This document shows positions 1 to 54,981 of a stretch of DNA of 64,000 nt, piece after piece. The number at the start of each line of letters is the position of its first letter. The stretch's first letter is position 1. Source of the stretch: Octopus sinensis. Its lineage: Eukaryota. A model generated the notes under the pieces. That model was given only the letters and a program-made list of their open reading frames with translations. It searched no databases and was not told the DNA's origin. The stretch lies in the NCBI RefSeq assembly GCF_006345805.1, contig NC_043021.1:27714001-27778000 (forward strand), in the 5' to 3' direction. Both the position numbers and the translations under genes were made by a program.

Positions 1-1491
1 TGGGACGCTGGACGGACGGACCGGTTAAATTGCTCGGGGTCTGGTTCGGTCCGGACCTCCAAATGGAGAAGAACTGGGGCGAGATAACGACTAGGGTGGC
101 TACTCTCACCCAGAAATGGGCTGAGAGAAAGCTATCCCTAAAAGGTCAGGCGGAGGTGGCGAACGCGTACATCGCATCCGTCATCGAGCATCGTGCCTTG
201 TCCCGACCCTACCATCACCAAACTGGAACGCATACTCTTCCGCTTCTTGTGGAAGGGCAACGTTCCGATGGTTAGGCGATCCATTTGCTGCCAACACCCG
301 CTAAATGGAGGGCTGGGCATGCCGTGGTTGATGATGCGCAGACATGCGCTGAGACTGCGACATCTCCGGCGCTTCATAGACAACGGTGAACAGGTGTGGT
401 CGCCTTTTGTGCGGCGCGCTTTTCCGCAGCTCGTCTCCTTGGACGAACTACAGTCATGGATCAAGCAGAGACCGAGGCTAGGCGAATGGCACCGCGAGTG
501 TCGCGTTGCTCTCAAGCAACTCTGCCGTCCGGGATCGAACTTGTGCGACTCCATCACAACAAAGGCATTCTATAGAGGATTAGTGGAGGGGAGGTGCGAC
601 GACGAACTCGGGCAGAGTCTGGGCGTCGACGAGGAACACCTGACCCGCCTGTTCAGGACAACTTTCGGGCCAGGACCTATGAACAATCACCAAAGATCCC
701 TGGCCAGCAGTGCTATCGAGAAGCATTACCTGTTCGGGATAAGCTCTACAGACACGGTTCCAGACACACTGGACCGACTTGCCCCAGATGCGGTCAGAGC
801 GACGAAACCGTTCTGCACGCACTCGTGCAATGTCCAACCATTTCAGACCTGTGGGCTTATGCCGAACGGCTGCTGTCACGTGTGGGACGAATCCGCCTAT
901 CAGCCGAGTCTATCGTGAGAGTTGCTCCGCCTCCTTCCCTCAACCGGAAAGGCAAGGCAGTTTTCATCGTACTGGTGGCCATGGTGAAAGAATGTGTGTG
1001 GTGGACCCGAGCGAAAGGATTAGAGACAAACACTTACCTCTCTGGCCAATCGCTCATCAACTTGAAAAGGAAGGTGAGAATGGAGAGGGAAGTTTTGTCT
1101 CGCGAAAGATTAAAAAAAAGATGGGTGAATGTTGCAAAGATGATGCGTGCGAGTGACGAAACCATTTTGAGCATGATCCTGTAGATCGTAAAAAAGAAAG
1201 AAAGAGAGCATTCTGATCTCATGTGGTTATTTCCTCCCTGACTGAGGTTCCCGTGGTCTTTTCTGTAGGCTTTTCTTCCCACGGATGAACCCAATCTTGT
1301 TTTATCTTGTTTTATCAATGTTTTTATCATTATTTCTGTGATACACGATTTCTTTTCTTTTTTTTCTCCTCTCGATCCCTTTTGATCGCAATCTTAGATT
1401 AATTTTCTTTTTTTCCACCCTCGAAAAGAAAAGCTCTGCATTTGTATTTGTCCCCTCTGTATTCAGCCCTGTGTGGCTAATAAAAGAAAGT
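1..1491 (+). mobile_element. Tx1-like (L1 clade) non-LTR retrotransposon copy A, 3' part; the element begins upstream of the window
   Basis: Frameshifted ORF2 C-terminus with [18 protein letters not shown] zinc finger, stop at 1184. 3' UTR nearly identical to copy D (36483-36788). Ends GCCCTGTGTGGCT-AATAAA-AGAAAGT then TATC. Confidence 0.93.
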
Positions 1492-1520
1492 TATCTGTCT
1501 GTCTGTCTATCTATCTATCT
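1492..1520 (+). repeat. (TATC/TGTC)n tract between copies A and B
   Basis: tatctgtctgtctgtctatctatctatct seen directly. Confidence 0.95.
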
Positions 1521-1926
1521 CGATCGATAGTGTTCATTGTTGAATCGGCTCGAAGGTCAATCGCCTTTTTTTATTGTTTTTTGAAAAAGTTTCGTTTCAA
1601 ATTTTCACGCACGGAGTGTGTAAGACACCCAGCTTTCGCCTGGGTGTGTTTTCCGGAGCGGATTTTGCCCCTAGGGGCAATTTCAGCCTTGATTAGATAT
1701 CAAAATTTTTGCTTCCATAGCTTGTTTTCACGTAATCTCGCCGAAGCGTTCCTCATAACACATAGACGCTGTTCTCTCTCTCTCTGTTGCATCCATTTGT
1801 TTACGTCTTACATTTTCGGAGTTTTTCAATTTTTCAAACGCCCAACTTTCGTTTGAGTGCTTTTTAAATGTAGAATTCGCCCCTAGGGGCATTTCCATTA
1901 ATTGATTTTTTATTTCTTGATAAAAA

Positions 1927-52205: not shown

Positions 52206-52574
52206 TGTGTATATGTGTAGATTTGTATGTTTTGCTTCGTTTATGTATTCCCATGCATTATATAGTGGCATATCGAGCCATGTTCCGATAAACATCTGGA
52301 AAAATTTCTACAGATTTCTACAGTTCCGGTGATGGATTGGATCTGATGTCTTCGAATTAGCTTTGCCTAATTTCTCAGGATTGGTATTTAGGTAGTGTGT
52401 TACTCATCCCAGAACCCCAATAATTACAGGTATAAACCTGAGAGAGTAACTGCAGATTTCTCAATAGTTCAGCGTACTGCTTGATATCTTGGGGAAGTGT
52501 CTTCTACTATAGTCTCGGTCAGACCAAAGCCTTCTGAGTGGATTTGGCTGATGGAAACTGAAAGAAGCCCGTTG

Positions 52575-53335
52575 TATCTATCTATCTATCTATCTATCTA
52601 TCTATCTATCTATCTATCTATCTATCTATCTATCTATCTATCTATCTATCTATCTATCTATCTATCTATCTATCTGTCTGTCTGTCTACCTATGTATCCA
52701 TCTATCTATCTATCTATCTATCTATCTATCTATCTATCTATCTATCTATCTATCTATCTATCTGTCTGTCTGTCTGTCTGTCTGTCTGTCTGTCTGTCTG
52801 TCTGTCTGTCTGGCGGTCTGTCTGGCTGTCTATCTATCTATCTATCTATCTATCTATCTATCTATCTATCTATCTATCTATCTATCTATCTATCTATCTA
52901 TCTATCTGTCTGTCTGTCTGTCTGTCTATCTATCTATCTATCTATCTATCTATCTATCTATCTATCTATCTAACTATCTGTCTGTCTGTCTGTCTGTCTG
53001 TCTGTCTGTCTATCTGTCTGCATGTCTGTCTATCTACCTGTCTGTCTGTCTACATATGTATCCATCTATCTATCTATCTATCTATCTATCTATCTATCTA
53101 TCTATCTATCTATCTATCTATCTATCTATTATATATATATAATATATATATATATATATATATATATGTCTGTCTGTCTGTCTGTCTGACTGTCTGTCTG
53201 TCTGTCCATCTATCTATCTGTCTGTCTGTCTACCTATGTATCTATCCATCTATCTATCTATCTATCTATCTATCTATCTATCTATCTATCTATCTATCTA
53301 TCTATCTATCTATCTATCTATCTATCTATCTATCT
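52575..53335 (+). repeat. Long (TATC/TGTC/TA)n compound tract, 5' flank of copy F
   Basis: Seen directly. Confidence 0.95.
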
Positions 53336-54981
53336 GCTGTCAACACCCGCTAAAAGGAGGGCTGGGCATGCCGTGGTTGATGATGCGCAGACACGCGCTG
53401 AGACTGCGACATCTCTGGCTCTATGTAGACGACGGTGAACAGGTGTGGTCGCCGTTTGTGAGGCACGCTTTCCCGCAGCTCGTCTCCATGACCGAACTGC
53501 AGTCGTGGATCAAAAAGAAGCCGAGGAAGGGCGATTGGCACCGCGAGTGTCGCGTTGCTCTCAAGCAACTCTGCCGTCCCCGGTCGACCTTGAGTGACTT
53601 CAACACAACCAAAGCATTCTATAGGGGATTAGTGGTGGGGAGGTACGACGACGAGCTCGGGGCGAACCTGGACGTCGACGAGGAGTACCTGACCCGCCTG
53701 TTCAGGACGACTTTCGGGCCAGGGCCCATGGACAACTTGCAGAGATCCCTGGCCTGGCAGTGCTACCGAGAAGCGCTACCCGTTCGGGATAAGCTCTACA
53801 GACACGGCTCGAGAAACACGGGGCCGACCTGCCCGAGATGCGGTCAGAGCGACGAAACCGTTCTGCACGCACTCGTGCAGTGTCCAACAATTTCCGACCT
53901 GTGGGCTTATGTCCAACAACTGCTGTCACGTGTGGGACGAGTCGGTTTATCAGCTGAGTCTATCGTCAATATTGTCACGCCTCCTTCCTTCAAACGGGAA
54001 GGAAGAGCTATTTTCATCATCCTTGTGGCTATGGCGAAAGAATGTATCTTTCATAACACTGTGATACACGATCCCTATTGATCGTTCTTTTTTTTCCTCT
54101 TCCCCCTTTTTTCCCCCTTTTTTTCTTCTTTTTTCATTTCTCTTTCCTTTTGTTCCTTTTCCTTTTCTTTTTTTTCTTTTTATTCTTTTTATTTTATTCA
54201 ATTTTTTTTTTTGTTTTTGTTCTTTTCTTCCCTTTTACGATCCCTCTTGATCGAAAACCTACGTCACCCCCCCTTTTTTTTCTTTTGTTTTTTGTTCTCT
54301 TCATCCCCCAAAAGAAAAGCTCTACCTTGTAACTTGTCCCATCTGTGTGCAGCCCTGTGTGGCCAATAAAGAAACTTATCTATCTATCTGAAAGAATGTA
54401 TCTTGTGGACGTGCCTGAAAGGATTAGAGACAAACACTTTCCTCTCTGGTCAATCTCTCATCAACTTCTTCAAGTATCACTTGAAGAGGAAAGTGAGAGT
54501 AGAGAGGCAAGTTTTGTCTAGTGAATGTTTTAAAAAAAGATGTGTGAATGTAGCAAGGATGGCACGTATGAATGACGAAGCCACCTTGACTATGATTCTA
54601 TGAACCGTAAAAATTAATACAGAGAGTTGCTTATTTGCAAAAAAAAAGGAATATAACATGTGACTTCATTGACCGAGGTTACCGTGGTCTTTTCCGTAGG
54701 TTTTCTTTCCACGGGTAAACCTCACCTGTCCTCCCCTTTACACTTCATATTGACATTTCTCTGATAACGATCCCTATTGATCAATTTTTTTTCTTTTCCC
54801 TTTTTTTCCTTTCCCCCTTTTTTATTGTTTTAATTTTATCCCCCCTTTTTTTCCTCTTTCTTTCCTTTTACGATCCCTTTTGATCGAAAACCAAACCGCC
54901 TTTTTTTTACCCCCAAAAGAAAAGCTCTACCTTGTAATTTGTCCTGTCTGTGTGCAGCCCTGTGTGGCTAATAAAGAAACA
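53336..54981 (+). mobile_element. Tx1-like copy F, 5'-truncated, E subfamily, interrupted by a nested insertion
   Basis: Starts at CCQHPLKGG; the ORF resumes at 54405 after the insert; AATAAA 54970-54975 then GAAACA-TATC. Confidence 0.92.
54051..54389 (+). mobile_element. Nested 339-bp Tx1 3'-UTR fragment (copy G) with 15-bp TSD and its own TATC tail
   Basis: GAAAGAATGTATCTT at 54036-54050 and 54390-54404; the insert ends GCCCTGTGTGGCC-AATAAA-GAAACT-TATCTATCTATCT. Confidence 0.9.

Follow-up and report, generated by a model that had tools for sequence, protein, structure and literature searches.

We identified seven copies of a single lineage of long interspersed nuclear elements (LINEs) in a 64-kb stretch of the Octopus sinensis genome (NC_043021.1), referred to here as the window and constituting the single locus from which all in-window counts are taken. 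The copies, labelled A to G, occupy ~35% of the window. All of them run into the tetranucleotide repeat (TATC)n at their 3' ends, and most also begin inside it. The preference for insertion into TATC tracts is quite probably genuine. Taking the statement as a whole, we lean towards a reading in which an L1-group LINE lineage favours (TATC)n.(GATA)n as its integration site, with a single orientation, by a process led by pairing between the RNA tail and the target.

Junctions with (TATC)n tracts

Direct reading of the junctions shows that all seven element 3' ends have the form GTGTGGC(T/C)A(AC)AATAAA, followed by 4-7 nt and then TATCTATC. The conserved 3' block of the elements includes GCCCTGTGTGGCYAATAAA. 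Six 5' junctions are visible, five of which lie inside (TATC)n in the same orientation. The 5' junctions of copies B (TATCT^CGATC, where the caret marks the junction; in longer form TATCT^CGATCGATAGTG), D (TATCT^CTTTT; longer, TATCT^CTTTTGATAGTA), E (TATCT^AAAAGG) and F (TATCT^GCTG, with 6/8 nt of microhomology to the tract) all follow TATCT. The junction of copy C reads TATC^GACGG but is ambiguous. Because B, C and D have a common 5' terminus, it can equally be read as TATCT^ATCGACGG, or in longer form (TATCT^)ATCGACGGACG. When the junction of copy G is included, 6/6 5' junctions are readable as TATCT followed by the element.

The 4-nt register is unbroken in every tract from the 3' end of an element to the next 5' junction, and the tract lengths of 29, 213, 761 and 13 nt are each 1 mod 4. 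Beside the elements the tracts are pure; degenerate units (TGTC, CATC, TACC) mark their outer edges. The seven (TATC)n arrays delimited by Tandem Repeats Finder (TRF; Table 1) directly adjoin element 3' ends on their downstream side or element 5' ends on their upstream side. These data, together with self-BLAST, bear out an initial annotation of this stretch, which had described seven insertions with 3' ends running into in-phase TATC, five of six visible 5' junctions abutting TATC, and a single direction of all copies relative to the TATC strand.

The initial annotation had also called two TATC tracts free-standing, and this too holds: upstream of 24288-24501 and 52575-53335, self-BLAST and a motif search found no element homology and no 3' motif. 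Insertions C and F sit in these tracts, which have no upstream element. Its claim of at least three diverged 3' untranslated region (UTR) subfamilies agrees with self-BLAST, which groups A with D (95% identity), B with C (91%) and E with F (85-91%) and leaves G as a fourth 3'-UTR variant. The reverse transcriptases (RTs) of the A/D and B/C subfamilies are 78% identical. The 3' end of the clipped copy A is AATAAAAGAAAGT^TATC, and A is 95.3% identical to positions 4719-6233 of D by self-BLAST. Since neighbours in the arrays come from different subfamilies and E is truncated, the array members represent independent events.

The TATC class makes up 3.0% of the window when perfect runs are counted, or 4.3% by TRF, and 39% of its microsatellite bases. 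The probability of finding at least five of six 5' junctions in TATC is 1.5e-7 to 8e-7 under random insertion and 0.0085 under a generic preference for any microsatellite. The common orientation has P = 0.03, and the common junction phase P = 0.016 to 0.004. The (AT)n, (ACAT)n and (AC)n repeats of the window, which total 1.2, 0.6 and 0.5 kb, respectively, contain no copy.

Table 1. Copies of the LINE lineage, (TATC)n tracts and associated features in the window
Feature	Position	Strand	Description
Copy A	1..1491	+	3' 1.5 kb of an A/D-subfamily element, clipped by the window start
Tail of A, target of B	1492..1520	+	TATC TGTCx3 TATCx3 T, 29 nt
Copy B	1521..7683	+	full length, 6163 bp, B/C subfamily, ORF2 in five reading-frame pieces
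(TATC)n tail of B or target remainder	7684..7919	+	TRF array; unoccupied; pure beside B, degenerate at far side
Unoccupied (TATC)n	14583-14686 and 15681-16054	+	no upstream element 3' motif; candidate empty targets
Free-standing (TATC)n, recipient of copy C	24288..24501	+	TRF array; degenerate 5' edge: CATC, CAGC, CGTC, TGTC
Copy C	24502..30342	+	full length, 5841 bp, B/C subfamily
ORF1 of C	25358-26317	+	CX2CX4HX4C knuckle
ORF2 of C	~26662-30044	+	
Tail of C, target of D	30343..30555	+	TRF array; 213 nt, length mod 4 = 1
Copy D	30556..36788	+	full length, 6233 bp, A/D subfamily
ORF1 of D	~31666-32175	+	
ORF2 of D	33044-36470	+	APE in 33044-34258, RT in 34307-35395, zf-RVT in 35427-36203
Tail of D, target of E	36789..37130	+	TRF array; internal higher-order duplication
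Copy E	37131..38465	+	E/F subfamily, 5'-truncated, begins at ~D position 4980
Tail of E or target remainder	38466..38613	+	TRF array; unoccupied
Further unoccupied TATC tracts	41105-41292 (opposite strand) and 61848-61897		
Free-standing 761-nt (TATC)n, recipient of copy F	52575..53335	+	TRF array
Copy F	53336..54981	+	E/F subfamily, 5'-truncated, split by G
Left target-site duplication of G	54036..54050	+	GAAAGAATGTATCT(T)
Copy G	54051..54389	+	339 nt, 3' UTR only, fourth UTR variant, nested in F
Tail of G	54377-54389	+	13 nt, TATCTATCTATCT
Right target-site duplication of G	54390..54404	+	GAAAGAATGTATCT(T)
Tail of F or target remainder	54982..55097	+	TRF array; unoccupied

Apart from those that adjoin elements, four TATC tracts in the window are unoccupied, and no element remnant was found at these. 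TATC tracts are also strongly strand-biased, with ~1.9 kb on the plus strand and 88 bp on the minus strand. Some of the long tracts have higher-order structure. In the 761-nt tract the block 'TGTCx3 TACC TATG TATC CATC TATCx15-25' is present three times, and in the tail of D 'CATCx3 AATC TATCx3-4' is present twice. Such structure points to unequal exchange or repeated tail-only insertions. Perfect-run microsatellites of all kinds account for 7.9% of the window, including ~720 bp of (TGTA)n at 51513-52230 and many (AT)n tracts.

An insertion outside a repeat

The site that received copy G is not a repeat. A 14-15 bp duplication flanks the insertion, and the homologous site in E (37863) is uninterrupted. 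Because G carries its own 13-nt TATC tail at a non-repeat site, the TATC repeat must travel on the RNA. The repeat serves both as an RNA-borne tail and as a target. Targeting is preferential and not absolute, as G landed outside repeats with an L1-like duplication. The initial annotation had proposed a site-specific TATC family; preferential, oriented insertion stands on the flank statistics, the junction phase and the free-standing tracts, but G speaks against strict specificity.

The first-strand nick for G lies on the bottom strand at ...CTTTC^GCC, outside GATA, which argues against a strictly GATA-specific first cut. The 5' flank of G ends in TATCT although the site is non-repeat; outside microsatellites TATCT occurs at a background frequency of 0.0016 per position. 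The tail of G ends 19 nt past AATAAA, which falls inside the usual 3' cleavage window of 10-30 nt and would agree with formation of the transcript end some units into the repeat beside the donor copy.

Coding content and classification

The pieces of the second open reading frame (ORF2) match the Pfam families Exo_endo_phos (2.8e-13), RVT_1 (1.4e-29) and zf-RVT (1.3e-8), and the protein would be ~1150 aa when aligned to an intact relative. ORF1 of copy C contains a CX2CX4HX4C motif whose match to Pfam zf-CCHC (E = 0.006) is under the curated cut-off; the corresponding matches in two relatives described below, L008 (8e-6) and L009 (5.5e-5), are above it. No RNA recognition motif (RRM) was detected in ORF1 with Pfam. 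Copies B, C and D have, immediately before the ORF1 core, runs of CAC, ACA and CAA triplets (2046-2101, 24861-24887, 31208-31242 and 31419-31465) that encode Thr/Asn-rich low-complexity stretches, the length of which varies among the three copies.

Compared with proteins of solved structure, the RT scores 127 bits to human L1 ORF2p and 59-71 bits to R2. Among retroelement endonucleases with solved structures, the apurinic/apyrimidinic-type endonuclease (APE) matches solely L1-EN, and the R1Bm and TRAS endonucleases are unmatched. The architecture of ORF2, together with an RT and APE closest to L1 among solved structures, supports placement of the elements in the L1 group.

Assignment to a clade within this group is less clear. 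The Tx1 clade has an ORF1 of the type with RRM and CCHC knuckle. A preference for a target and the absence of poly(A) are both present here, and these are typical of Tx1 but do not define it. The only labelled Tx1-type reference was a bivalve consensus, T.granosa_5 '#LINE/L1-Tx1' (PMC10294476), which does not discriminate: the window RT scores 124 bits (32.6%) to it and 120 bits (31.0%) to human L1, and the consensus itself is closer to human L1 (147 bits) than to the window RT. Of the earlier description of the elements as 'Tx1-like', the L1-group part is supported by the RT match of 127 bits to human L1, and the Tx1 part is not shown by scores of 124 and 120 bits. Young 'L1-Tx1' families have been annotated among the repeats of octopus and other coleoids in published work, which is consistent with Tx1 membership but is no test of it.

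Searches of the window and of the loci of relatives with Rfam and ARAGORN found nothing, giving no multicopy RNA gene as a target and, in the window, no tRNA-like head of a short interspersed nuclear element (SINE). RNAalifold gave no consensus structure for the last ~130 nt of nine copies.

Relatives and a change of tail

Related elements carry a different repeat at the same position. Two families from metagenome-derived host DNA (L001 and L002) have RTs 72-75% identical to that of D, and their 3' ends consist of the block GTGGCCAATAAA(A)GAAA followed by ATTATT. A third, L012, is from Argonauta hians (P0369; GCA_054771915.1 BAAFZT010000007.1). Its RT is 61-68% identical to that of D, and its full-length copy ends in GTGGCTAATAAAAGAAATA^ATTATTATTATTAT. 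All three retain GTGGC(C/T)AATAAA(A)GAAA, followed by ATTATT in one phase. The APEs of the TATC and ATT families are ~61% identical. More distant relatives (L003, from cuttlefish, and L004, L008, L009 and L010), with RTs 50-55% identical to that of D, stop a few bases past AATAAA and have no repeat tail. We considered whether the (ATT)n relatives are Dong/R4 elements and rejected this, as their endonuclease is an APE.

A neighbour-joining tree with bootstrap was built on 212 RT residues from the TATC, ATT and tail-less families. The TATC copies form a group with support of 1.0, as do the TATC and ATT families together, with the tail-less families outside. Monophyly of the ATT families has support of 0.28. 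The tree implies that the TATC copies are one clade inside an (ATT)n grade, and hence that tail and target were switched. In the simplest reading, the repeat-tailed sub-lineage was ancestrally (ATT)n and one branch moved to (TATC)n, after which this branch would have split into at least three or four subfamilies that retained the repeat.

The Argonauta locus contains, head to tail, a LINE 3' fragment, three tRNA-derived SINEs and a full-length LINE. The LINE fragment is preceded by TATTATTATT and followed by (ATT)17. In the 20 kb examined there are at least 20 tRNA-derived SINEs (e.g. 4903-5362, 187, 11842, 15213) that carry the LINE 3' block TGTTCGGCCCTTGTGGCTAATAGAGAAATCTATTT. Such SINEs frequently adjoin one another head to tail, without a spacer, each on an earlier tail. 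The shared 3' block hints that abundant tRNA-derived SINEs of octopods may have the LINE lineage as their autonomous partner. No SINEs of the Argonauta type were found in the window, where a motif match at 39653 is a chance one.

Other relatives give further detail on copy arrangement and 3' ends. L010 (ENA ERZ26052130 ctg11195c), with ~54% RT identity, has head-to-tail copies that are 94% identical and have a 7.55-kb period. Its contig was flagged as circular by the assembler, and a T-rich stretch of ~0.9 kb lies between the 3' end of one copy and the next ORF1. This spacer was considered as an RNA gene and rejected, as it contains no Rfam or tRNA gene. The short-read contigs of L013, L014 and L015 break off before or at the tail. 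L014 has a 3' UTR of the type seen in the window, and its contig ends ~30 nt short of the tail. L015 (ENA ERZ25513664 NODE_271; ~64% identity) ends in CTCTTGTGGCCAATCAACACACACATCATC and has lost AATAAA; it may carry an AC-rich tail, its contig being short. The tail-free 3' motif GCCCTN{1,2}GTGGCYAATAAAN{0,1}GAAA matched metagenome contigs three times, each time by chance in a bacterial-looking contig.

Proposed mechanism and alternative explanations

In the mechanism we favour, a resident copy would be transcribed from its conserved 5' end, and the transcript would end a few UAUC units into the tract, AATAAA being only 4-7 nt before the tract. The endonuclease would then nick the bottom strand, and the (GATA)n 3' end would pair with the UAUC tail and prime reverse transcription in register. 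Such pairing in register would account for both the TATC start of every tail and the single register of each tract. Finally, the top strand would be cut after TATCT and the cDNA joined there. We infer the origin of the tail (read-through and 3' cleavage), the pairing step and the nick positions, and our confidence in the full pairing-led mechanism is evenly balanced.

Pairing of tail and target would act as the main filter in this scheme and the endonuclease would be only loosely specific, so that a change of tail would carry the target along, as in the (ATT)n sister families. We propose pairing as the main filter because the first nick of G is outside GATA, because tail and target co-vary in sister families, and because SINEs that carry another tail are likewise found stacked, one on the tail of the next. 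The stronger proposition, that target choice is set mainly by pairing of the RNA 3' repeat with the target strand and not by the endonuclease, with the target in effect 'written' in the tail, is possible but doubtful.

Several points weigh against the pairing-led scheme. Only six events can be scored, all from one 64-kb locus, and they are clustered, three of the six being insertions into the tails of earlier copies. Every copy in the window is coding-defective, with frameshifts or stops, and gives no guide to activity or biochemistry. No poly(A) follows any tail, and for this reason the 3'-processing step is conjecture. TATCT recurs at the non-repeat site of G, a sign that the endonuclease recognizes sequence when it makes the second cut, and the endonuclease may be more important than a pairing-led view assumes. 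Target choice by published site-specific APE LINEs is credited mainly to the endonuclease (Kojima 2015, PMC4494074).

A strong rival, which we nevertheless consider rather unlikely, is that targeting is real but is due to a sequence-specific endonuclease cutting at defined TATC/GATA positions, as happens in R1, TRAS and SART and has been suggested for Kibi and Koshi, with the UAUC tail as passive read-through of the target. The uniform TATCT at the 5' junction, even for G, fits this explanation, as do published accounts in which it is mainly the endonuclease that decides the target of Tx1- and R1-clade elements. With an identity of only ~61% between the APEs of the TATC and ATT families, specificity could also have changed. 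However, the first nick of G at ...CTTTC^GCC is not in GATA, and pairing is the simpler explanation both for the joint change of tail and target between sister families and for Argonauta SINEs with a CTATTT tail that stack on each other's tails. It is improbable that the LINE merely seeds microsatellites, inserting without a target and carrying (TATC)n or having it made by the RT, as snake CR1 elements do with (ATA)n and (AATAG)n (PMC3157835), with TATC at 5' ends by coincidence or through later growth of tracts. The RNA-borne tail of G and its insertion outside repeats agree with such seeding, for which snake CR1 is a precedent, and TATC tracts are nearly all on the strand of the elements. 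However, TATC tracts hold five of six 5' junctions (P below 1e-6), two of the insertions (C and F) are in tracts that no element precedes, the junctions keep one phase and the tracts an unbroken register, and there are unoccupied TATC tracts with no element remnant. In addition, elements of the tail-only class belong to CR1, L2 or RTE, whereas the RT here is L1-like and not CR1- or RTE-like.

Quite improbable, too, is the origin of the arrays in single events, by a template jump from the RNA 5' end to a UAUC tail, or in unequal recombination between tails. B and D do have extra non-homologous 5' nucleotides (CGATC and CTTTT, respectively) of the kind found at template jumps, the relatives L010 and L012 are also in arrays, and the tracts contain higher-order duplications. 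However, C and F are preceded by free-standing tracts, and E is 5'-truncated yet downstream of D. The tracts between elements (213-342 nt) are also much longer than the sole tail of known length (13 nt), and neighbours are 9-23% divergent and of different subfamilies. Passive accumulation in a repeat-rich region of low recombination, in which elements and TATC merely co-occur, is highly improbable. The microsatellite content of 7.9% and the presence of several other transposable elements in the window are what it would lead one to expect, and Drosophila Waldo-A and Waldo-B, found near CA repeats, are a proposed precedent (PMC3812793). However, passive accumulation leaves the base-precise junctions, single orientation and single phase unexplained, and no insertions are found in the 1.2 kb of (AT)n or 0.6 kb of (ACAT)n of the same window.

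Other elements in the window

Two RT fragments at 19271-19549 (+) and 20073-19897 (-) are inverted relative to each other and belong to a related LINE, with 74-75% nucleotide identity to B, C and D. The DNA between them is unrelated, and neither fragment is flanked by TATC or has a visible element end. A separate retroelement is bounded by direct terminal repeats of ~0.85 kb (55298-56154 and 59722-60565) that are 97-99% identical and ~4.42 kb apart and that include purine-rich and GT-rich simple sequence. ORFs between these repeats (56210-59450, minus strand) have a weak match to RVT_1 (6e-8), and the element at 55298-60565 may be of the long terminal repeat type or Penelope-like. A mariner-type transposase fragment (Pfam HTH_48, E = 4.9e-22) is located at 12785-13285 on the minus strand.

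Comparison with known microsatellite-targeting elements

LINEs that target microsatellites have been on record since 2003-2004. R1-clade families have been described at (ACAY)n and (AC)n, Tx1-clade families at (TC)n, (TTC)n and (TTCC)n/(TTTC)n, and Dong at (TAA)n. The way in which APE-type elements select a simple repeat continues to be called poorly understood (PMC3812793). A family has been regarded as microsatellite-targeting where >20% of its flanks are the same microsatellite (Kojima 2015, PMC4494074). In the window, TATC is found at 5/6 5' flanks and 7/7 3' flanks (one locus), and a fixed orientation and a reproducible junction position within the repeat unit are both present. A search of the literature open to searching, with all rotations of the unit and with Tx1 or non-LTR elements, returned no LINE that targets GATA/TATC; Repbase and Dfam were outside this search.

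The lineage extends the microsatellite-targeting LINEs to a new repeat unit and, probably, to a new host group, the cephalopods, and it suggests that part of the GATA/TATC microsatellite load of the genome is shaped by a LINE. Related families with (TATC)n and (ATT)n (72-75% identical in RT and ~61% in APE), together with tail-less outgroups, form a comparative system that could separate endonuclease specificity from tail-target pairing. If pairing does set the target, the shift from (ATT)n to (TATC)n could have come about simply through a new read-through tail, and likewise for the SINE partners. The lineage would then be a natural RNA-programmable variant of L1-type integration.

The closest parallels are Kibi at (TC)n, Koshi at (TTC)n and the crocodilian Tx1 elements at (TTCC)n/(TTTC)n (Kojima & Fujiwara 2004; PMC4494074). 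These are also L1-group APE LINEs with one microsatellite on both sides, a fixed orientation, no poly(A), and a target that varies among related families. However, the unit here is TATC/GATA (ATT in the sister families), the host is a cephalopod and not a vertebrate, and one copy has both a non-repeat target duplication and an RNA-borne tail. Waldo at (ACAY)n and Mino at (AC)n are likewise APE LINEs with a microsatellite target, a tetranucleotide in the case of Waldo, and a fixed orientation. Both are insect elements of the R1 clade (I group), whereas the RT and endonuclease described here match L1.

The (ATT)n sister families use the (TAA)n target of Dong (R4 clade) on the opposite strand, and Dong-R4 elements are abundant in octopus. 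Dong and R4 have a restriction-like endonuclease after the RT. In contrast, the endonuclease here is an N-terminal APE, as identified by Pfam, and none of the restriction-like type lies downstream. In snake CR1 seeding (PMC3157835) the 3' end of a LINE is also a short tandem repeat that is spread through the genome. However, those elements are of the CR1 clade and have no reported preference for insertion into repeats, whereas here the repeat itself forms five of six 5' flanks. Human L1, the closest solved relative (127 bits), makes a loose APE nick followed by pairing of the RNA tail, as modelled here. It differs in that its tail is poly(A) and not (UAUC)n, and in its mammalian ORF1 with coiled coil, RRM and C-terminal domain in place of a CCHC knuckle. 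These comparisons are consistent with TATC/GATA being a new target repeat for a known kind of microsatellite-targeting LINE.

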